From: Klebsormidium nitens
Lineage: Eukaryota > Plantae > Klebsormidiophyceae
DNA length: 58,696 nt
Direction of reading: 5' to 3'
Assembly (NCBI GenBank): GCA_000708835.1
Contig: DF237500.1
Span: 1 to 58,696 of the forward strand
Shown piece by piece: positions 1-14,497 of this stretch. Both the position numbers and the translations under genes were made by a program. Position 1 is the first letter of the stretch, and every line of letters starts with the position of its first letter. The notes beneath the pieces are model-generated. The model did not search any database. It worked only from the letters and a program-made list of their open reading frames with translations, and was not told where the DNA came from.

Positions 1-1075
1 AAACAGTGTCAGCACCTAAGATTGAATTGAATGTTCGTATGACTGATTGAGAAATGCATCGTAGAGTTAAAGTTTTACCAGTGCCAGCACCTCCGGTGAA
101 GAAATCGATTGATGGATCAGACGGTGGAGATTTGAGGCAGCTCATAACATGATCCACGTAAAGTCTTTGGGCTTTCGTAAGTTTCCGCATCTCTTGACGA
201 AATTGAGAATCCGACAGCACGAAATCAGCGCACGGAATTGTTTCACTGATCTGCGAAGCATTAGATGGCTGCAGTTCTGGGTCAATTTGATATTCCGGAG
301 GAGGGGCGGGCTGTAGCGGATTCTCCGTGTCGTCTGCGTCATCATCGTCATCCTCATCACTTATGGCACGCTCTTCTTGCTCGTAGCCCTGTAACAAAGA
401 CTTGAGGTGTGCGGTGTCTGCTGCGGGTAAAGTTTCCGCGGTTTCTTCTACTGCGTTCCAGTCTACGTTAGCGTCGGCAAAGAAGCGCGCAGCATTCTCT
501 TGTATCGACAGTTCTACTTCTTGAAACCTGGCTTCAAATGAAGAACAACCGTGAAGTCCGTGAAGAAGCGCTTCATCTTCGTGCAAAGAGATATCTACTG
601 GGTTATCAAGGGGTAAAGACCAAGGATAAAACAGCAACAACTGTTCACGAAAGTAAGCGTCTGTGTCCTCGCTCTCTTTGAAGTGCACAAAATGAATTAC
701 TTTTGCTTTGGAGCGTTTTCGATATATGCGATCGGACAATGACGGGGTTGACCGAACAGAAGTTTTTTTGACGTCATCTACGACGTCAATTGGTACGTCG
801 TCTGTTGCAGGGGAAAGATCGGTGTCAGGAAGCGCGTCGTCGTATACGTCCTCTTCGGCTTTAGGAAACGTTGACGAGTATTCATACCAAGCGGCGAAGT
901 CAGCCAAGCAAAGGGATTCAGTGCCTTGCAGCGTTACGTTCGAGAGGCGAGCAGCATATCGGTCAACGACGCTTGCGTGAACGCAATTCGTAGAATTTGG
1001 CGGCAAAGATTTCAAATATTGGTCATCCTTCAAAAGAAACGTTCGTTCTGCTGGTCTGGAAGAAGGAATGAAGAT
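1..1075 (-). pseudogene. Helitron RepHel C-terminal linker and start of Pif1-family helicase
   Basis: Hand translation gives an open frame from about 1075 to the window edge (absent from the ORF track because it has no stop in the window): IFIPSSRPAERTFLLK...LCLADFAAWY...YFREQLLLFYPW...LTKAQRLYVDHV...FFTGGAGTGKTLTLRCISQSVIR. Confidence 0.9.
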
Positions 1076-1106
1076 GTGATCGCGAGTACAGTCGAAGCGG
1101 CAGACC

Positions 1107-2822
1107 TTAACAACTGTACACAGCTTGTTGTGCACAAACTTCTTGACCTCGAATGAATGCGGAACCTGCATGCCTCACAGACTGTTGAAGGCCCATGTTC
1201 CCGAGACTAGCTTCCCGATAAGCGGCGCGCAAAAGTTTGCTCATTTTCAAGTCTGTTTTCATCATGTATGAAGTTATATAGTTTGCCGCTGCATAAACGT
1301 CAAGGGCAAACTGGCAATCCATATTTGTATGCAGAATTTGTAACAAGCGCGGATTGTAGGGATTTATCCTCCTCTCTTTTGGTGCTCTTTTCAAAAAGAT
1401 GGTAGGTTTGCAGACACTAGCACGCAAAGCAAGGTCATATCTGTCTCTGGTTACGCGTAGCCGGCAGATGAACTCAAAAGTCGACATTTCTTCGAGTTCA
1501 GCTTCTGAAAGAGCGTCAATTAAAGCTTTAGCTTGCTTATATATTCGGCAGAGACTACGTTTTTCTGATTCAGGGACGTTCTCGGGAAGAGGTCTCAGCA
1601 GTACTGTGGAAAACGTTGGAACGCGGGGAAAATCGAAACGACAGACACGTTTTCCTGCAGAATCAGGATCTTTTAGGCAGTATCGTTTAGAATGGTTATG
1701 TTGTTGACCTTGAATGTCCGAAGCAGATGCATCTTCAGTGGAACAGGTAATACGCTGGTCAATGAATGCACATATCTCGCTATCCGGTGAGATTCCAAAG
1801 CGGGGAGCAGCAGCTATATAGAAAGCTGCATGTGTGTGGGCAGTGCCTCGTTTTTGGAACTCGTCTCTCCAGAAGAAGTCGGTTACTTGACCAAGAAGTT
1901 CAGAGCATTGGGAGAGAGTAGAAAAAATTAGGTCACGTCGGTTACAATAACAACGGGCAGTGGTAACAGGGTCATTTCTTACTAGTATTGCTTTCTGTTC
2001 CCAGGGAAGCGCGAGAGCTGCCACTTTTGTTATGTCTTCGCCAGAAGCTAATCGGTACAGAGTCTGCAATAGGCCACCCCACTTAGTTTCAGCCATCGAA
2101 AAAGTGCAAAATAATTGGAACGGTCCGAGTTGTCGGATCATTCCAAAAGCTTCTCGTTTTCCTTCACGATCGTAGTCTGGGCTACCACGTAGGGTCTTTA
2201 GATCACGATAACCAATGTTCTTTGAGAGTAGCTTTTCTCGTGCAGACGAGTCGCGAACCTCTGCGGCAGTGAGCGGCTGGCGACCTTCAAGTTTGCTTTT
2301 ACGAACGCGCATCTTTCCTAAGCGACTTAGCTGAATCATTTGTAATTTTCGAAGCTTGTAAAAGAGACAGCTGGCATGCGAAGCGAAACGGCGGTCGACA
2401 TTTGTTAGTTCAAAGCGAGTTAGCTGACTGTATGAAAGAGATGATTGTGGTCGCGCGCATCCAGCAAACAGCGACGGGAAACACTTTTCTTCACCGTGAA
2501 TATCTTGGAGCATTCCTACAGGCGTTTGATTTTCAGAAGGAGCAATGTTAATAGCTGTTCTCGATACTGTTGGCTGCGCATACAAGTCATCCAGAAACGT
2601 TTCTTCTTCAGGGAGAGCTTCCGTACCGGGCCCGGCATTCTCATCTTCGCTACTGTCAGAAGCGTTATCAGATGGCAATTCGGAATCATCGGTTCTACAA
2701 GCATTTGCATCGGCTTCACTCTGACGTAACCAATCAGCTCGAATAGATACTTGAGCATCTCTCCAGAGCGTTGGTTCAGAAACGAGATACTGCAAAGCCT
2801 CTCGCAGGCGGTGCGGTCGCAC
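1107..2822 (-). pseudogene. Helitron HUH replication-initiator (Rep / Helitron_like_N) segment
   Basis: Characteristic motifs LRGSPDY, MIRQLGPFQLFCTFSMAETKW, DPVTTAR, WRDEFQKRGTAHTH (HUH), QHNHSKRYC, CRFDFP, INPYNP, NMDCQF, YITSYMMK. Ends at an in-frame TAA in QQAVYSC*GLPL, where Leu is expected. Confidence 0.92.
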
Positions 2823-2864
2823 GTTTTCGGCAGTTTTATAAGAAGCGCGGTATTTTAGTTTGTA

Positions 2865-3449
2865 TTAAATAGACACGGGTATAATATCCTCTCCAGAAAG
2901 TTGTCGAGGTAGAGATAGCTGTATTTTGCTTAGATCTGCTGGAACATTGGTAACCATGCCCTTCAGGGCGCGTTGACCCAATCTGCGGGGATCTCCAGAT
3001 GCCGACGGTGGCAAACCTCGAATCCTAATAAAAGCCAGTCGTAGCGCGATTAGATCATTTTCCATGCTCGTAAGGCCTTGTAAAGGAGTTGGAATTGCGG
3101 TAAGATCCGGCTGCTTGCAGGGTGCCATAGGGGGAGTTCGGCCTTTGGACACGTAGTTGTAGCACGTTGTGCAAATCCATTCAGTATTATCCACAGAGAG
3201 CTGGGAAGCGAACCATTTAGCACTGTTTTGGGGGCCTGCTCGGTCCCGCAAAGCGGACGAAAGTTTATGAACAGAACGTCTGAACCACGTTCTGCGACAG
3301 CACGTACAAACGAATATGGGCCTTTCATTGCTAAGTCGCTCAAACCGAGCGCATGCGTCCGAGAAGTTCGTTCTTTGGGATAGAACGGGCGAAGTAGTGC
3401 TTGCATCTGGAGTAATGCAGTCATTGATGGTAGAAAGTAGGGTGATGAT
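2865..3449 (-). pseudogene. Helitron N-terminal Cys-rich plus DUF6570-like segment
   Basis: Frame reads ...ERPIFVCTCCRRTWFRRSV...WICTTCYNYVSKGRTPPMA...LTSMENDLIALRLAFIRI...LKGMVTNVPADL...LPR...IPVSI*YKLKYRASYKTAENVRP. Same frame as the Rep ORF, separated only by TAA 2865-2867. Confidence 0.8.
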
Positions 3450-4028
3450 CTAATGGCGTTCGTTTTCGGGGATATCGAGGGACTGGTCCGCTGGGAAGTT
3501 CGTTTTCCGCTTAGTTCGGCTGATGCGGACGGCGCAATCGTACGCAGCGGCTGCTTCCTCAGCTTTTGGGAAGTGTCCCAGAATGAAAGTCTTTTTTGAA
3601 AATGTAATACGTGCTTCGTAACACTTCCCAGAAGGAGAAGAAATTGGACGCACGCCAATAAAATGTCGTTGATTCTCACCTTCTGTAAACTCACCTTGAA
3701 TCTGTTGCAGACATTTCATTGCATAAGCTTCTTCTGCATCCAACGGCATCCCCTGCGCAGTGAAGTCCAAGTCACGAATGTTCTGAACACGTGCTCCCAG
3801 CTTCTCCCGCATGAAGATGTACGCCCGTGCAGCTGCAGCCGCCGAAGAGAATTCACCTACCCGACAGCGCCTGCCAGCAACTTGGATGCGAACTGCGTAT
3901 AACTGCGACCGTGAAGACGTGCTAGGAAGCTTACAGATGCCTTTCATTGACTGGACTGCAGCCGTTGGAGCTTGTTTGCTACCTTTTGCTTGCTGAACTG
4001 GCAGCTGTCGACCACGACGGGTTTGCAA
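3450..4028 (-). pseudogene. Tandem AP2/ERF-like DNA-binding domains within the Helitron ORF
   Basis: Domain 2 is a clear AP2 pattern: HFIGVRP...GKCYEARITFSKKTFILGHFPKAEEAAAAYDCAVR...KTNFP. Domain 1 is divergent: KGICK...LYAVRIQVAGRRCRVGEFSSAAAAARAY...LDF. Confidence 0.8.
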
Positions 4029-5243
4029 GTGTAATTAGGCACGTCTTCTTCTGAAGAGTCTTCAGAAAAAGCACCTACACCATCAGATGTCAATGGTGTA
4101 TCTGCTGGAAAGCTTGGGGGAGCATCAGGCGGTGCTGAAGAGCGTGGGGAGGTATGAGGCGGAGAAGCAGTAAACGACGAAAAACCAGGACTTACGTAAG
4201 GAGATTCGTCCAGCTGGCTGGCAGCTTGTTTAGAACTCTCACATGCACGAGCTACAGCAGGCGACTCCGCAGAAACTGGGGATGCTCCAAGCATAGAGCT
4301 GTACTGTTGCGGAATAAATTGCATGTCTTTAGCAAGAACAGCAGATATAAGTCTACAGGTGCCCATCTTCCTGATAGTGTAACCCGCGTCTGGACCATCC
4401 CAGCTGACTATCTTCCCACAGAAAGGCTCGTAAGCTGCCACTGGGCTGATAACCTGCACATATGTGTCTATCTACTCTCCAGGATTCGCTCCCGCCTCCA
4501 TTGCAGAAGGAGTCGCCATGGCCGACGAAGTAATGCTGCAGCTTTGTATCCACCTAAAATGCTGGACAAGAAAGAAGAAAGAAGGATACGAGCGAGGCAT
4601 TACAGCGTTACGTCCGAACTATCGGCGGCACCGCGGGCGCATTCGACGGCGAGGCAGTTTCGACGCAGCCGCGCGAGGGAGTCTGAAACGAAATGGCCAT
4701 AAGGGTGTGCCAATCTGTTTCGGCTTTGCTGTACGTTTTCCGTCGAACGCCAGGCAAGCCCAAAATCCAGCGCAGACTGGGGTCACTCAGGGCCCCGCAC
4801 CGCGGCGTCGTACAGTGTCGCCCGAACCGCGACGTTCCCCAAATACTATAGCTCTCTCTTTACTAAGAGTAAAGAGGCAAGCCAATATAGGGCAACTTTA
4901 CTAAGTTATCATAGTACATACACAGGTTAATTTTTCATTCACAACATGATGTGCATGCATGACGAGTATATACATGATTGATCATCACGTGAGGGGCCCG
5001 CTGCTGTCTAGCTAGCTAGATCGACAGCTCTAGTTATTGCATGACGCGGCCGTGCCTGCAGGCCGTGCGCACGTTTGTGAACGTGCATATCGAGGCGGCC
5101 GCCAGGCCATGATTAGATCGTCTGACCAAACCTAAGTTACTGAACCTGCGTGCGCCGCTAAGATAAACATGTTCTTCGATGAAGTAAGCCTCAACGTCTC
5201 GAAGGCGTACATAAGGGACTACATCATTTCGCAATCGCAACAT

Positions 5244-7726
5244 CTATTCCCTGTATGCAAACGCCTATAAGGTGTCATACATGGACCTCATCTTGTCCCG
5301 TACGCGTCGTTTGAAAGCCACGAACGGAGGCGCGCAGAATGCAACCAAGTTATGCTTGCCTGCTAGCTATGGACTCCGCATGAGTCCTTGACTGACGCAA
5401 CCGACGGTTCACCTTGTGACAGCTGTACTATCATCGTCTCCATTGCCACCTCTCTGGGGCGGAGCCCGGAAACAGCTTTTGAAATACGTGAGGGACTACC
5501 TTATCTTTGCAGGGCCCCTGGAAGTGTATTCCTGCCAACAGAGTGCCGTTATGGTAGGGCCCCAAAACGCCACGGGGCGTCATCCGCCAGTCTAGATACG
5601 AGTCGAAATGCGCCCCGCTTTCGCATATGAAGGACTCGTCTCCTGGCGGCCGTAACCTGCACGCCACACATGGAGCAACAATAAGATTCCTCCTTTTCTA
5701 GAGAACGGACAAAGGGGACTGCAAAAGGGAGTCAGTCAAGTGAGGCCGAACCAGGGTGAGTTCCAACGGCTTGTATATCCCGCTCGACTTCTGGAAGTCA
5801 GCTGGGAAATTCTTCGTTAGCCATCGCCTGCAAGACCGCCTGCCAAGCTCGCCAGAAACTGGGAACAATCGTCAAAGCTCACGACAAAATCGGGAAAAGT
5901 CGTTAGAAAGCGCAGAGAAGAAGCGGCTAAGTCGCGCTTACCGGTTGGGGTTCTCTAGCGCCACCAACGACTTCATCGCGTCCTCGTTGTCCAGGAGCGT
6001 CGTCTTGCTCACGTTTTGCGATTGCAGGAACGCCGAGAGCATGAACATGTCGCTGAACTGCCACACGTAGTTGCTCTGGTTCTTTGGGTCCGCGTCCCGG
6101 GGGTACAGGATGTAGTCGCCGTACTGGTGAATCGTGTCGTCGACCTCCGACTCGGGCCTCTGCAAAACCATGGAAGAGGGACGTGTCAAGCTTCTGGAGT
6201 TTTTGGGTCTCCATTTTCCAAAAAGGGGGGGAAAATAAGAACAGTTTGGATGTATCGGGGGGGTTAGCCACAGTCCCCATACTGGCGTATCTTCTGCCTC
6301 AGTTCTGATCTGGTTTTTCTTGATCGAGGGCGCACACAAGGGGACTTGATTAGGTGCCTAACCAAAAGCATATCCGCTCTGACTAGAGACAGACAGCGCG
6401 GCCCAGAAACCGTCAAAAGCTGCTGGATCCATGGCTCTAGGGAACGTTTGCCAGTTTGTTTTGGCATGATTCTTCCCGCAGCTCATCAGGTGGACTCATC
6501 TCTCAGATATCTACAAGGCCCTTGAAAAGGCTAGTGCATAAAGCAGAAGTGGCCTACGTGGAACTGAGGAAGCGTGAAGAGTTATGATAACTTGAAAGGA
6601 GGTAGTTGTATGCTGTTTCCAAATTCCTCAAGAAATGCCCTTCAGCCAAGACTCGACCTAGTTTGGCAGGGCAAGGGCGTCACAAGAGGCTGGGAAACCG
6701 TCAATCAAAAAGTAGATTGCCTCAGGAAGCTATCAAAGGCGTCAGTACCAGGAGAGGAGGGCGCCAGAAGCCTAGGCAGCCAATCCACGGGCTGTCAAAC
6801 TACCCGCGAGATGGCATGCCTTCTAAGAGCCTGTCCATGAGCGGATTTTAAAACAATATATCAAAGCCCGCATCTTGAGTCTTTGAAACTAACTCTGCTG
6901 GTCAACTTCTGGCTGTATGCTCTTGAACCAAGTGAGAAGTAGCTGGAAGTGCGTCCATTGACATCTACGTGTGCAGAATCTAAACAGAAGCTTCAAAACC
7001 TAGAAGACCAGAAGAGCCAGAGTCCCTCACCTGATAGAACCACAGCATGTACTGGCAGAACTCCTGCAGCGTCTCGAAGCGCCAGAGGCCAAAGTAGGTC
7101 GACCACTGCGTGATGCTCACAAACCCGGAGCGGAACTTGGCGAACGGCGTGTCGTGTACGTCCATGAAGAGTGCGATGTCAGCATCCGAGTACGCCATCC
7201 TGTCTATCCCTTCCAGCAAAGCGACTTCTTTGAGGATAAAGAACCGCTCGAAGCACATCCTCTCATACCAGAGCGGGTTGACCGCTCGATGAATGTAATG
7301 CTTGCGGAAGACTTCGATGTCGGACCCGGGGTGAATGTAGTGCTCGACGTATCGCACCTTCACTCCCAGCTGCTTCAAGCTACTCAAGATCTCTCCTTTT
7401 GGGGGGGTTGCATTGCTTGTGAGCATGTAGAGGGGCGTGTCGGGATTGAACGTCGCGGTGATGTTGAGAAACACCAGGGCGCTCGCTTTCATTTCGGTGA
7501 TATAGAAGAAGATGGGAATTGTGGTATCCCGGCTCCTGCTCCGACCAAGAAAACTGCTGGCTAGGCCCCTCATTGCCCCCATGTCTCTAGGGGCTTGGAA
7601 CCCCATTGTATTCAAATGGCAGGTCTGAAAGGCGAAGCGCAGGGAGACGGAAGCGAGCAGAATAACCGCCAGAAAGGCAGAGTGGCTCCGCATCCGCTTC
7701 CATCCCACGCCTTCCATGACCCCCAT
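5244..7726 (-). CDS. Spliced putative glycosyltransferase-like (nucleotide-diphospho-sugar transferase-like) type II membrane protein
   Basis: Exons 7726-7031, 6159-5942 and 5656-5500 have GT-AG sites and compatible phases. The last exon is uncertain (candidate 5264-5244). N-terminal hydrophobic anchor (AFLAVILLASVSL), CFERFFILKE, DxD motif (YSDAD), QFSDMFML and IHFQGPCK. Confidence 0.7.
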
Positions 7727-9248
7727 TCTGACAGCTGGGACACAGAGTTACTGAACAGAATGATGCAATCACCTTCTCAATGCCGCAGCAGCGTGCTCTC
7801 CAAGTACCTTACAGACGTGGTTGAGTCATCAAGATGGGGCAATTGCTACTTTCGCTCGATCAGCTTCAATTTTTCGCAGCGATGCATTGAGATTGCCTTC
7901 AATCCCGCTGGCGACTCGGTTTTTGCAGAATTCCCCCAATCTTTCCCCCCTCCGAAACTCCCAGATCTTTCCTCATCAGGCCCTCACTTGATCGAGTAGA
8001 AAACCAGGAAGCCAAAAACCCAGGCAATCAAGAACAGAAAGGCGACATCTTTGAGAGACAGCAGGCGCCCCTACCTTCCTGCCAGGTACTTTTCTGCTCA
8101 GATTCAGAACGCGTTGACTGATTGAAGCGAAACCCTAAAACCCTTGCAGGGGGACCCATAACGGTTTAGTCATAACCCAATACTCACGGCTGCTCTGAAA
8201 GAACAACCGGGGGACTTCTGTTTGAGCTAGACACAAAAGCCGGTTGTTGGAGCTCATTCACCGTCACTCACGATACTTCATACCTGTTGTGATCTATAGA
8301 CTACAAGCTGAACAACGGGAAAGAAGACGTTCTGTCGCCAATGTCGGAACACGGACCGGGGCCCATACACAAGTCCCTGGAGGGGCCAAACCCGGCCAAA
8401 CCCGTATTCTTGAAGGGTCAGCGCGTTCCAGTTTCCCAAATTTCGCACCGAACTTCTTGAAGTTGAAGTTGAAAGCTCCACTCAGACCACCGGCTGGCAG
8501 AATGTACATTGTATTACCTATTTGTACGGTAGCTGAGCCTGACGCTGTGGCAAATGCAGCCAAAATGGCGGCAGCTAGGATAAGCTTAGCACTGGTCAAT
8601 TGGTCAGCTACCATCATGCATCATGCATCATGCAGCTTCGTGCCCATGCCATATTGATCCAGCTCCTTTGAGTCCACCATAGCCTCTTGCTTTGGGAGTA
8701 AAGAGAGCGAGAGGCCAGCATTGAAGGAAGTTTCGACAGGACGGGTGGTCTGAAAGGGTGTCATTCAGGTCCTGGTGGGACTCTGACTGTAACCAAGGCT
8801 ATCTGCCGAGTGCAATCGTCTTAGACCTCAGACGATTCTCCTCAAGGAGGGGCTTCTTGAACTCAATGTGAAGGTTAGTGGTGTAACTCATTCTGTCCAT
8901 CTCCACATGCCATAATGTGTACATTGTTTGCTGCAGTGCTTCACTTGAGGTGACAAAGTTAAGAGTCTGTTTGTGTCCAAGTTAGGAGTCTGTTTGTCTA
9001 GCAATTGCTTTCTGATTGCTCAGGAAGGGAGCAGCACTTCGGGGGTTTCCCATTCAGCGACGAGATGCAGGGCACTACTCCACAGCTGGCAATGCTGAAA
9101 ACAGAGGATTGCACGCCAGCCCTGCTCAATCTGCAAACAACTAGACTTCGAGGGGAAGCATCTCTTGAATACTCCTGGCTGGTGCGACAATGTATCTTGT
9201 TACGTCGCTAAAGTTGTACATAGCTTTTTTGCAGATTGGATCACCGGC

Positions 9249-12200
9249 ATGGCTGAGGACAGATCAAGGAAGCGAGACGTTGATTCACCATCAAATTACA
9301 CCAGGACTGAGAGCAGCAAGCATGCTCGGGTAGAAGATGATCTTGAAACAGCGTCTAGCAGGCAGAGTGCTCAGCAAAATAGCCCCTGTAATCTATCTAA
9401 CGTGCCTACGGAACCGGAAGAAGTCCAGTTCTTTGTGAAATCACTGAGTGGGGAGACTCTAGTGGTGAGAGAGCCAGTCACGAGAAGCTTGGAGGACCTA
9501 AAGCAATCCATTTTGCAGAGGTGGACTCATGGAAGGTCCAGCCAGATGTGCGAGGCGGCTGTTTTCTTCACTTGTGAAGGGAAGCACTTATCCAAGGAGT
9601 GGCAGACCCTAGGAGGGGTGCCAGTCAGAGCAGGCAGCACGCTCGTAATGCGGGTGCGCCTCCGCAGCACCAGGTAAGTAGCACAGGCAAAGAGTAACAA
9701 CCTAGAGTATGAGGTGATGTTGGTTATCTCCCCACATTGCACTGGTGATTTGCCATGTTGAGCCTGCTGTGTTGCTTCCAAACTTGAGTCAAAAATCGAC
9801 CTCTGCGTAAGTAGCGGGCCACCAACATGCGTGATTAACCCTCTGCAGCCCTCTCTTGCGGGGAATGAAGCTGGCCAGCAGAAAACAATGCACTTACAAG
9901 CTGCGAGAAGTCGATAACAAAATCTTGTATCAGCCACTTGTCAAGGACATACAGTACTCCTCAAGGAACCTCGTGCGTCATTGTACTTGCAGGAAGCTAT
10001 GGTAACAAGCCCCAGTCAAAGTTGTCAGCATTTCAAGTCATACACTTCCTAGTTGTCTTGAACACAGGTTTTCTTGATACCGACTCTCCTCTTCCTTCAT
10101 TCCAGTTGCAGAACAGTGGCTGAGCACAGTGCCAAGCTGCAAGAGCTCGCCAAGAAGATGGTCCAGGGCCAGCGCACAGATGCAATGGTGGGGACATTCC
10201 TAATGACTCTGAACCTCCATCTCCTGACCCCGGGCCAGAAGGATCATGATGCAGAGCATCGGGTTGCCACGTTTGTGGGGACAGGAGGACTGGAGGCCAT
10301 CACGTCACTACTCGGCAGCAACAGCTCGTGAGTTCACTTCACTTCACAGGCAAATCATGGTCTCAGCTCTACGGGCTGCTTTTTACAGAGCCACATGTGT
10401 ATACATCTGAGCTGAGCTCGGCACTCTGAGTTGTCGTCAAGCTTTCACTTCTGGCTCTCAACTCATTTATGCTGTCTTGTCGCTGTTGCAATGAGTAACC
10501 TGGCAGCCATCTGATACTGTTTGAAATGTTGAAGGGTTTATAAAGCTTCTTTTAGTTGTACTGCTCGCAGTTGATGGTAGAGGTTGGAAATGTAGTACTC
10601 AGATTGCATGCCTAGCTCAAGAGGACAGTCTTCGTCTGCCAGATGGCAGAACAGTCTACAACAAGCCACACCAATCTCACTTAAAGCGAACCACCGTTGC
10701 TTGCCCAAGTAACGTCGGCCCTAACACCGTGATGTCTTTACTTCTTACTGTCAAGACACCAAAACACGCACTGTTGTCTTTGCAGGTTCGTCGCTCTCTA
10801 CACCGTCCAACTGCTCTGCAAGCACCTGGCAGACGCCTCCCTTATCGCCGTCCTGACTGGGTGGCACCTCCTTGACGCGCTTCTGGACCGCTGTTCTGAC
10901 GCCGCCAGATCGGATAGCGTTTTGAGCAACTACCTGCGGGACCTTTTCAACCGCCTGTGTGGCCCAAGCGCGATCCAGAAAACTTTCTTGCAGCTAACTT
11001 CCGACCAGAATTGTGGGGGCGTGCGCTTTGCTGCAGTCTTTGCAAAATTGGCAGCGAGGTTGGGGGTGCTAATCCAGCGAGATGCGGCTTGTCTGGGTCA
11101 GGGGTCGCCGCTGCCGGCGCCAGAGTTTCCTAGCTTAAAAGAAGTCTCGGGTGTTCTAGATCGTCTTCAGCGTTCAGGTTATCTTGACGAGCAGTACGAA
11201 AAGTGCCGTGAGGAGCTCTGTGTACAACTCAGCCCGGCCGTTGAAGCGCTGCTCGGTGATGCGATCGAGGCGACCGGCCATCGAGAATATGCAAGGCAGA
11301 TTGTGGCTGCGGCTCTAGATCCTACAAAGCAACGTGCCATTCCATTGAGCCGCTCCTTGACGCTCCGAGGGCTGCCACCGACGTTCTTCGAGCACCTGGT
11401 TGGCTGCCTGCGCGCGCTCACGAAAGCCGCAAGCGGAAGGCCTGATCTAGAGGCGAAAGTGCGGGATTTGCTCTCCGAAAACTCAAACCCTCTGGAAGAT
11501 TTGCTAACGCTTCAAGTGCCGGGCACATTCACCGCTTCCGAGCATCTGCGGTGTGTTTTTGAGCTGCCCTACCGGGATCTGTGGCCGCTGCACCTCAAGG
11601 AGAGTTGCTTGAGGGACTATCTTCCGTTCCCGCTTCCGGTGTCCGGGCATCGGGTCGACGTGAGGCGGGGGTCTCAGACGCTGGCGGACGCGTTTAGCGG
11701 GATCGAGGAAGGCTTCGACGCACGCACGCTGAGCATGGGCATCGTTGCGAGTTTCCAGAACGAGGCGGGGCTAGGTCCGGGCGTAATCCGCGAGTTCTTC
11801 ACAGTGGTAAGTTGCCCCGTCAAAGAGTTGAGTTCATCCGTTGCCTGATCGACTTCCTTAGGAGCGACGAGGGAGACCGTGGCACCTGTGGCGGAGCCTC
11901 TGCGCCTATCCTCTACACATTTCTATCAGATCGAGTCGGAACACGTTGTGCAGATTAACTAGAGCAGAGGATTGAACTGATGACTTGGACTCGCCTTTCT
12001 ATCCTGAGTTGATAGTCAGTCCACAAGTGCATTCTGTTCAGAAGGCGTCAATTCTTTATTCCGTCAACAGAACGAGACTTGACTATAAGACAATTGCCGA
12101 ACGAGGGGCAGTGACTTGCAATCCCCATTCACTGAAGTAGTAACCTTCAGAGTTCCTCAACAGCAGCGCTTTCGATTTTGTCAACGCCTCGACTCTGTTG

Positions 12201-14497
12201 CTTCCGCTCAAGTCTCGAGGCTGACGCTGACTTGAGCGCAAGGGTCTGATTGCTCTTACGATCCCTTTCACCAACGTCGTCCGGGTAAAACTCGCGGAAC
12301 GAAAGTCTCACGGTAAGGTACAAGCTATGGTCTTCTCGCAGTCATACTTCTGCTCATGCGTGACTTGCTTCTGACACAGGTCAGCCGAGAGCTCTTCAAT
12401 CCAGAATTCGCCCTGTTTCGCACCGCCCCCGCCGACCGCAACCGCCTGTTCCCCAACCTCAACTCCGATGTGAATCCCGGGCATCTCTCCTACTTCCGCT
12501 TCTGTGGCCGGTTCATCGCTCTGGCCATCGCCCACGAGATGCCGTTGGGAATCACGCTCTGCTCGGCGCTCGCGCATGGGCTTCTGAGGCGCCCGGGAGA
12601 GTCCCCCGGGGGGCAGAGTGTGGGGCACTTCGCGGCCCGGGACATCGACCCCGAGCTGTTTGAGTCGTGCGAGCGGCTGCTGCAGCTGCCGGAGAGCGAG
12701 GTGAGCTTTGAGTCTTTGAATATCGTCATATCAAAGGGCCGCAACTTCGCATCAGCATCATATCTGGTCCCATATCGGGTTGCGTTGCAGGTTGCAACGA
12801 GCTTTCTGGACGAAGGGCAACACGTGGTTGCTGCAGTGAGCGGGTCCTCAATGGGCTCGTTTTTGGGTTTGATAAGGCTTTGGGCTAGAGACTGAGCTGG
12901 ACGCTCTGCCAAACCAACCTGTGCTGACCCGTGAAACCACCGCAGCTTATTGCACTGGGTGATTCTGGTAGGTCAGGTTGCGAACTCCGGGATTCAGGAT
13001 GCAGGGATATGGCTTCGTTCGCACTCCAATCTGTAGGATTGTGCAAAGTCGAAGCAAGTGTATAAACCCACAGATGCTGTCACGCCAATGCCGGATCAGG
13101 GCGTGGAATCTCGTGAATTGCCGCCGGTTGTAGTTGTGCTGATTCTTCGTTGACTGCCGGCATGATTAACACTCTGTAAGCTACGAGAAGGCGCACGAAA
13201 GCCTGTTGAAACAATGGTCCTATACTTAATGGACGGCCCGCCCAAAGCGGAAGACATCTGATTTTAGCCTTCCTCTTTTCCAGGTTGCGCAGCTCGGCCT
13301 GACTTTTGTGTACACGACTGAGCGCTTGGGGGGCCATACCGAGCAGGAGCTGTGCCGGGGGGGCCACGACAGAGAGGTGACCGCCAAAAATCGGGCGGAG
13401 TTTGTCAACCTGAAGGTCCGGAAGCAGCTGTTGGAACCTGTGCGCCCGCAGATTGCTGCTCTGAGGGAGGGCTTACAAAGTCTGCTGTGTCATGGCGGCA
13501 AAGAATGGCGGGAAGCGTTTGGCATCTTGACGGAGGAGGTGAGCAACCTTTAAGTTGGTTCTTAACATTTAATCTCTGAAGTGATCACTAACTGTAGAGG
13601 CAGGCGAGTTCCGAATGGAACGAAAAGGACGACGCGGAGCGTTTTGTAGATGCAGATTTACGTACTTTGCTGCATGACTTCGCTTCGCAGCCACGACGGT
13701 TTTTGGTCTTTGGTTTGTGGTCTTTGGTTTGTGCAGGGTTGTGGGTCGGACTCAAATGAATCTGGAGACGAGAGTTATTGAAAAGGCATGAAGTCGAGGT
13801 ACCATTGTTGAGCAAAGCATGGCAAGCCTAACCCGTTTATATCATCTTTTACCTGAAGATTTTCTCATTTTAGACGACCGACGTGTGAAGAAAGTCTGAA
13901 AGTTGCTAAGACCTCGATGCATGTCATGCCGTCAATTTGATCCTTATCGTTTGCACTTGCATATGCTCATATGCGGCGCTTGTCTCTAACTTTAAAAGAC
14001 CTCGAGCACAGATTGGGTCGGTAATGGGCTCCACAAGATTCTCAGTCAAGAGAGGCCTCAAACTCAAAAGGTTTCCGACAAACTGTTGCATTCCTCAGAT
14101 TGTTTATTGCGTGCAGGAATTCAACTCCTTGCTACACGGCTCTACTGCGGACATCTCCATCGAATATTGGATGGAGCACACCACCTACCATGGGTACACT
14201 GACGAGCATCCTGTCATCCAGAACTTCTGGCTGGCTGTCCAAAGCCTGAACCCCGATCAACAACGCAACTTACTGTTCTTTGCTACCGCCGTGCGGTATC
14301 TTCCTTCCATAGGCTTTGCCGGCCTGTCCGAGCGCTTTCACATCCACCACACGGATGCCGCACCAGAGAGCCTTCCCAGAGCGCACACATGCTATTTTCA
14401 ACTAGTGCTTCCCGCTTACGGTTCTTACGAGCTGATGAAGCAACGGTTGATGACAATAGTGCAGCAGCACGTTGTGGAAGGGTTTGGAGAAGTGTGA
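9249..14497 (+). CDS. HECT E3 ubiquitin-protein ligase with N-terminal ubiquitin-like domain (UPL5-like architecture)
   Basis: Exons 9249-9673, 10112-10327, 10786-11806, 12380-12700, 13284-13538 and 14117-14497 splice in frame. UBL: VQFFVKSLSGETL...GSTLVMRVRLR. HECT: FQNEAGLGPGVIREFF, LFNPEFALF, YFRFCGRFIALA, FWLAVQSL, LPRAHTCYFQL (catalytic Cys). Confidence 0.9.

Follow-up and report, generated by a model that had tools for sequence, protein, structure and literature searches.

Helitron-type transposases are known to acquire additional protein modules, among them proteases, endonucleases and modules that bind single-stranded DNA. A very large family of plant regulators is founded on the AP2 DNA-binding domain, the origin of which has been linked to mobile endonucleases. 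Both the HNH-AP2 homing endonucleases of bacteria and phages and the tyrosine integrases, with their AP2-like arm-binding domains, are mobile-DNA enzymes that use an AP2-type fold for the recognition of DNA. In the main text of two papers on Helitron-type elements (Thomas et al. 2014, PMC4067079; HELIANO, PMC11417382), RPA, OTU/Herpes_teg_N, EN, B3, STPR and SET are named as accessory domains, together with others. AP2 is absent from the main text of the HELIANO survey (PMC11417382), which leaves one of its 20 domains unnamed there, and we found no description of a Helitron or Helentron transposase with AP2 domains in the searchable literature. Helentrons, the group most relevant here, are recognizable by signatures around motif 2 of Rep, namely a nearby (F/Y)-x-R and a Ser between G and P (Thomas et al. 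2014, PMC4067079), and their termini carry subterminal inverted repeats and a 3′ palindrome, with insertion occurring between T and T. Furthermore, DUF6570 is almost exclusive to HLE2 and to the RepHel ORF, as stated in the text of the HELIANO survey (PMC11417382).

Here, we describe an element from the streptophyte alga Klebsormidium nitens that departs from these systems by an AP2 pair within its transposase. The window, that is, the whole stretch of DNA that was analysed, comprises 58,696 nucleotides (contig DF237500.1 of assembly GCA_000708835.1, positions 1 to 58,696). Positions 1-4870 on its minus strand are very probably the 5′ part of a decayed Helentron, whose ancestral protein carried the AP2 pair as a putative DNA-binding head. 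The features of this copy are collected in Table 1, and all positions of the element given below refer to the minus strand.

Table 1. Features of the decayed AP2-containing RepHel gene and its 5′ region in the window
Feature	Position	Strand	Basis or comparison
Conserved 5′ non-coding region	4599..4870	-	85% identity to L002 1-270
RepHel ATG start	4517..4519	-	MATPSA... aligns with starts of P0002, P0003, P0153
Premature TAG, codon 16	4472..4474	-	Relatives have Leu
Conserved 65-aa N-terminal module	4277..4471	-	70-85% aa identity between copies, dN/dS 0.07-0.12
Low-complexity Ser/Pro-rich linker	4041..4276	-	25-42% aa identity, pN ~ pS
Frameshift, N-terminal ORF to AP2 ORF	4030..4037	-	DNA compared with SSDEDxPIS-LQxRR in L002, L003
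AP2 domain 1 (divergent), ORF residues 28-80	3789..3947	-	AF2 model, WRI1 alignment
Helical linker between AP2 domains	3684..3740	-	AF2 helix 97-115; aligns with WRI1 inter-domain linker
AP2 domain 2, ORF residues 121-182	3483..3668	-	Best Pfam AP2 stretch; AtERF1 Z 9.1
In-frame TAG after AP2 pair	3450..3452	-	Arg in L001 and L003, Lys in L002
CxxC...CxxC zinc-finger-like motif and DUF6570 (2880-3146)	2868..3449	-	Pfam DUF6570 33.1 bits; 69-80% aa identity to relatives
In-frame TAA	2865..2867	-	Lys in L001, L002, L003
Rep (HUH) nuclease region, Helitron_like_N 1830-2414	1110..2864	-	Pfam Helitron_like_N 70.8 bits; 83-86% aa identity to L002, L003
In-frame stop	1107..1109	-	Leu in L002, L003
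Frameshift	1074..1080	-	Frame switches between SRS and HIFIPSS
Rep-to-helicase linker and start of Pif1-type helicase, Walker A 71-94	2..1075	-	Open frame; weak AAA_19 and PIF1 matches; colinear with L002

An initial annotation of this DNA had placed the AP2-AP2 ORF (3450-4028, 192 aa), the CxxC/DUF6570 stretch and the Rep ORF in one common minus-strand frame, and this is confirmed both by the list of open reading frames and by reading of the DNA. Between the segments at 3453-4028, 2868-3449 and 1110-2864, there is nothing but the TAG at 3450-3452 and the TAA at 2865-2867. The ORF at 1107-2822 is open back to 2864. Beyond the TAG, 66 open codons (3449-3252) lead to FVCTCCRRTWF, as had been described. 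The gene, however, reaches further in both directions than was recognized in the initial annotation. Upstream, it starts with an ATG at 4519, followed by a further TAG at 4474-4472. The N-terminal part is represented by the ORF at 3944-4459, from which a frameshift at approximately 4030-4037 is needed to reach the AP2 frame, and approximately 165 extra residues precede the AP2 pair in the protein. Downstream, a second frameshift at approximately 1074-1080 is followed by a frame of approximately 358 open codons, which extends to the window edge and includes the Walker A motif GGAGTGKT (71-94). The window copy therefore is a pseudogene, disabled by four premature stops and two frameshifts. It is cut by the edge of the window, and its 3′ half is absent. 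No second copy was found within the window, where tblastn with three pieces of the element returned only self-matches.

The family nonetheless is represented by better preserved members. The three nearest matches to the AP2 ORF (P0002, P0003 and P0068) and a RepHel relative (P0153) lie on four contigs, L001 to L004, of a single Logan assembly, SRR23617307. These copies may therefore represent paralogues, from one genome or from a sister genome, and not independent lineages. In the protein libraries, the family occurs in one sequencing run only. Word-match searches, a method that misses longer fusions, gave nothing useful with either the AP2 ORF or P0002 as the query. Scanning metagenomes with the AP2 alignment yielded a single AP2 contig, L005, which is unrelated. 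The copies are old, with a DNA identity of 74% between the window and L002 and synonymous differences between copies that are near saturation.

The relatives preserve the gene to varying degrees. L003 carries an uninterrupted ORF of 1271 aa that comprises the N-terminal module, the linker, both AP2 domains, the CxxC motif, DUF6570 and Rep, after which a frameshift is followed by PIF1 and Exo_endo_phos. In L002, a single frame of 2170 codons begins at the corresponding start and extends, across PIF1 and Exo_endo_phos, as far as the AP endonuclease terminus. The sole stop in this frame is a TAG at 1480, inside the linker between the AP2 pair and the zinc finger. L001 is open from the start across the AP2 pair into Rep and then decays. 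A zf-MYND ORF (L001:3025-3594) lies after its truncated Rep and is probably captured cargo. L004 is a more distant and frameshifted copy, in which the order of the domains is unchanged. The stops at 2865 and 1107 had been regarded as decay at a conserved Lys and a conserved Leu, respectively, and this was borne out by the relatives, which read SIKYKL and GCLGLP at these places. It had also been suggested that the codon at 3450-3452 be inspected in other copies, where it proved to be a sense codon (Table 1). The initial proposal of an ancestral AP2-AP2-DUF6570-Rep-helicase protein, with the stops as products of its decay, thus agrees with the open frames of L003 and L001 and with the one stop in the 2170 codons of L002. 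In full, the ancestral protein would have consisted of the 65-aa module, the low-complexity linker, the two AP2 domains joined by the helical linker, the CxxC/DUF6570 region, the HUH Rep, the Pif1-type helicase and the AP endonuclease, the last of which is seen in the relatives.

The position of the stop in L002 deserves a closer look. Two copies carry a stop within the same linker of approximately 45 codons between AP2 and zinc finger (at 3450 in the window and at 1480 in L002). Tobamovirus-type leaky stops have the context UAG-CAR-YYA, and the stop of L002, the only defect in its 2170 codons, stands in the context TAG-CAA-TCG (L002:1480-1488), which resembles it and may be leaky or mere decay. 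This would suit a gated layout, in which the N-terminal module and the AP2 pair are made separately and the fusion to RepHel arises only from occasional read-through. However, the two stops occupy different codons, L001 and L003 have no stop in the linker, and the window stop, which belongs to a copy with five other lesions, has the context TAG-ATC, which is not among the known leaky contexts. As the sample behind such a layout moreover amounts to four or five copies, we consider it improbable and prefer a transposase that was translated as one continuous protein.

As to the class of the element, it had initially been called a Helitron RepHel. The family, however, is of the Helentron type, with a C-terminal AP endonuclease and DUF6570, and not a canonical Helitron. 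This assignment follows from the relatives, whose frame ends in an AP endonuclease, in that Exo_endo_phos is found in the same ORF or frame as RepHel in L002 and L003. The Pfam matches to DUF6570, which lies within the RepHel ORF, and to Helitron_like_N exceed their respective cut-offs of 24.3 and 28.9 bits. The catalytic motifs of Rep are intact in the window, with the HUH motif FWRDEFQKRGTAHTH and the two-Tyr motif Y-x3-Y-x2-K. The helicase is barely reached there, with the Walker A motif and the weak matches listed in Table 1, and a full PIF1 is present in L002 and L003. The closest RepHel proteins outside the family are animal Helentrons, with approximately 32% identity, which carry a Herpes_teg_N/OTU-type domain.

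The family shares with Helentrons/HLE2 the HUH Rep, the F-W-R by motif 2, the fused Pif1-type helicase, DUF6570, the CxxC zinc-finger-like N-terminal region and, in the relatives, the C-terminal AP endonuclease. It differs from them in that its RepHel ORF includes the 65-aa N-terminal module and an AP2 pair, and, unlike in animal Helentrons, no OTU domain was seen in this family. A further difference concerns motif 2 itself, which reads RG-T-A-H-T-H, with neither the S-P nor the L-P of the two published variants, next to the F-W-R signature, whereas Helentrons have G-S-P-H-x-H.

The identification of the AP2 domains required particular attention. Of the profile searches that had been proposed to verify the domain assignments, those for DUF6570 and Helitron_like_N gave scores above the cut-off, but AP2 did not, since the window reached 28.7 bits, in two stretches, against a cut-off of 33.3. 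No copy attains the gathering score of Pfam AP2 (PF00847), the relatives having 22.9 bits, 12.9 bits or no match, and the AP2 call was therefore tested by other means. A phmmer search with the 192-aa ORF against 1.84 billion representative proteins returned 375 matches at E ≤ 0.001. The scanned matches from outside the family comprised nine multi-AP2 proteins, one protein without a Pfam match and P0028, a bacterial protein with Ig repeats. Some of the multi-AP2 proteins reach 190-250 bits with the AP2 profile of Pfam. Among those scanned, none of the long AP2 matches outside the family has Helitron domains. In an alignment with 24 short phmmer matches, both halves of the ORF align to canonical AP2 repeats. 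An AlphaFold model built on this alignment has a mean pLDDT of 80.7, with approximately 90 in the cores of both domains, and displays two units (residues 31-76 and 126-170), each of three strands and a helix, that are separated by a linker helix (97-115). In domain 1, the strands span residues 31-33, 44-50 and 53-60 and the helix residues 63-76, at a pLDDT of approximately 90.

Structural comparison of this model pointed to AP2 as well. The best nine Foldseek matches all are AP2 structures. In VIA-align, WRI1 gave a Z of 9.7 over residues 28-183, thus covering both domains. AtERF1 matched domain 2 with a Z of 9.1, superposing 59 of 63 residues at an rmsd of 1.8 Å and an identity of 36%. For TEM1, the Z was 9.0. 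The other structures above 3.6, a Toxoplasma mitoribosomal protein (5.5) and AtERF96 (5.1), both are of the AP2 type, and unrelated structures did not exceed 3.6. The hallmark residues GVR, YEARI, LG-F, AAAAYD and TNFP are invariant across the copies. In domain 2, this applies to R127, E138, R140 and A159-D164, and domain 1 retains R47 and the SAA-A-R helix. The Arg of GVR and the E-x-R of strand 2 are residues that contact DNA in the AtERF1 complex. Domain 1 has diverged, but it has a nearly canonical form in the distant copy L004, and the first repeat of both L004 and L001 is recognized by an AP2 HMM. Judged by the confident AlphaFold model, which settles the sub-threshold Pfam call, the segment is a pair of AP2 domains.

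One could still suspect that the resemblance is spurious and that the segment represents another small beta-alpha fold that binds DNA or RNA, given the low Pfam scores and the fact that dsRBDs and the arm-binding domains of integrases reach a Z of approximately 3-3.5. This is very unlikely, because AP2 structures stand five to six Z units above these folds at 31-39% identity, the hallmark residues do not vary among copies, and the phmmer E-values of 1e-21 to 1e-10 were obtained against proteins that themselves are strong Pfam AP2 matches.

Having identified the segment as an AP2 pair, we turn to its place in the protein. Pairwise Nei-Gojobori counts between copies were used to estimate selection. 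In the AP2 segment, pN (0.24-0.38) is below pS (0.52-0.71) in all six pairs, with a dN/dS of approximately 0.2-0.5. Constraint is stronger in the CxxC/DUF6570 region (dN/dS 0.07-0.10) and in Rep (0.03-0.04), and the AP2 pair is the least constrained among the folded parts. Taken with the open fusion in L001 and L003, these counts show the AP2 pair to be integral to the transposase and under purifying selection, not a one-off captured fragment. That part of an AP2 gene of the host was acquired by the window copy and came to lie in frame with Rep by chance is scarcely tenable, for even though Helitron-type elements frequently capture host fragments (PMC11417382) and L001 does carry a zf-MYND ORF, the order of N-terminal module, AP2-AP2, CxxC and Rep is shared by four diverged copies (approximately 74% DNA identity, 41-57% aa identity in AP2), with frames that are open and pN below pS.

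The 65-aa N-terminal module is better conserved than the AP2 pair. It has no match in Pfam at E-values up to 10, an AlphaFold2 prediction from four sequences gave a pLDDT of 38, and atlas scores were below 0.9.

Conservation extends upstream of the gene. All four copies share a conserved GC-rich non-coding block of approximately 85 nt (4600-4685), which precedes the ATG by approximately 100 nt, although synonymous sites are saturated. It can be drawn as a possible stem, but without covariation, and window positions 1-7000 contain no Rfam match. Further upstream, positions 4800-4870 match the initial 70 nt of L002 almost perfectly. They contain a 14-bp palindrome, CTCTTAGTAAAGAG, at 4856-4869, which is preceded by T's in the window and matches L002 2-15, one nucleotide from the start of that contig. 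This palindrome is a candidate for the 5′ subterminal palindrome of the element, and together with the conserved block it provides candidate cis elements. A 3′ partner of the palindrome was not found in L002. Downstream of the RepHel stop of L002, there are two direct repeats of approximately 65 nt each (L002:7027-7160). No AP2 binding motif was found; the conserved 5′ block has a GCC-like hexamer, but not every copy retains it.

With respect to function, the AP2 pair is predicted to act as a sequence-specific head that binds double-stranded DNA. Such a head might direct the transposase either to conserved subterminal sequences of the element itself or to favoured sites in the genome. It would supplement the DNA-binding region of zinc-finger-like type that is already present in Helitron-type transposases.

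Where this head came from is a separate question. The best PDB match, by sequence as well as by structure, is WRI1 (7wq5), a plant double-AP2 factor, with an alignment that spans the linker. Like the WRI1-type factors of the AP2 subfamily, the Helentron segment has two AP2 folds and a helical linker of similar length, and the arrangement R1-linker-R2 is colinear. However, the identity is approximately 21-26%, domain 1 has diverged strongly, and the two domains are not oriented relative to each other as in WRI1 (rmsd 9.5 Å over 117 residues). Nor is the segment a host regulatory gene of the double-AP2 kind, as the module sits at the front of the transposase ORF in every copy. A tree of 216 AP2 domains over 66 columns offers little resolution. 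In it, the R2 domains of the four close copies fall into one clade (SH-aLRT 98) that excludes the R2 of L004, and R1 groups with the repeats of the green-algal Apatococcus protein P0024 (SH-aLRT 88). The tree and the WRI1 match fit a capture within the green lineage, without fixing the donor or the direction of transfer. It is tempting to go further and to propose that the R1-linker-R2 unit of the Helentron and the plant double-AP2 regulators (AP2/ANT/WRI) share a direct ancestor, and that an early streptophyte or green-algal transposon donated the tandem AP2 head or moved it between lineages, with the pair providing recognition of the ends or choice of the target; we regard this as a long shot.

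The comparison with HNH-AP2 homing endonucleases and tyrosine integrases is instructive in this context. Four of the phmmer matches (P0099, P0084, P0108 and P0141) have an HNH-like motif ahead of their AP2 repeats, which is the known arrangement of homing endonucleases, and the arm-binding domains of integrases match the AlphaFold model at a Z of 3.3-3.5. Unlike in these enzymes, the partner of the AP2 fold in the Helentron family is a HUH Rep with a helicase, the host is a eukaryote, and the AP2 domains form a tandem pair with a plant-like linker.

The AP2 pair represents a new kind of built-in, predicted DNA-binding head in a Helentron family. A transcription-factor head with predicted sequence specificity inside a transposase is a different kind of addition from the modules that Helitron-type transposases are otherwise known to acquire, and it offers a testable route to how elements of this type find their ends or their targets. 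Furthermore, tandem AP2 domains borne by a transposase in a streptophyte alga provide a concrete case for traffic between mobile elements and host regulators. The copy in the window itself is a fossil, and its value rests in the family to which it belongs.

Elsewhere in the window, on the plus strand, we observed exons of a host HECT-domain ubiquitin ligase at 12356-12892 and 13937-14494 (47 and 113 bits, respectively), as well as a weak ubiquitin-like match at 9165-9674.
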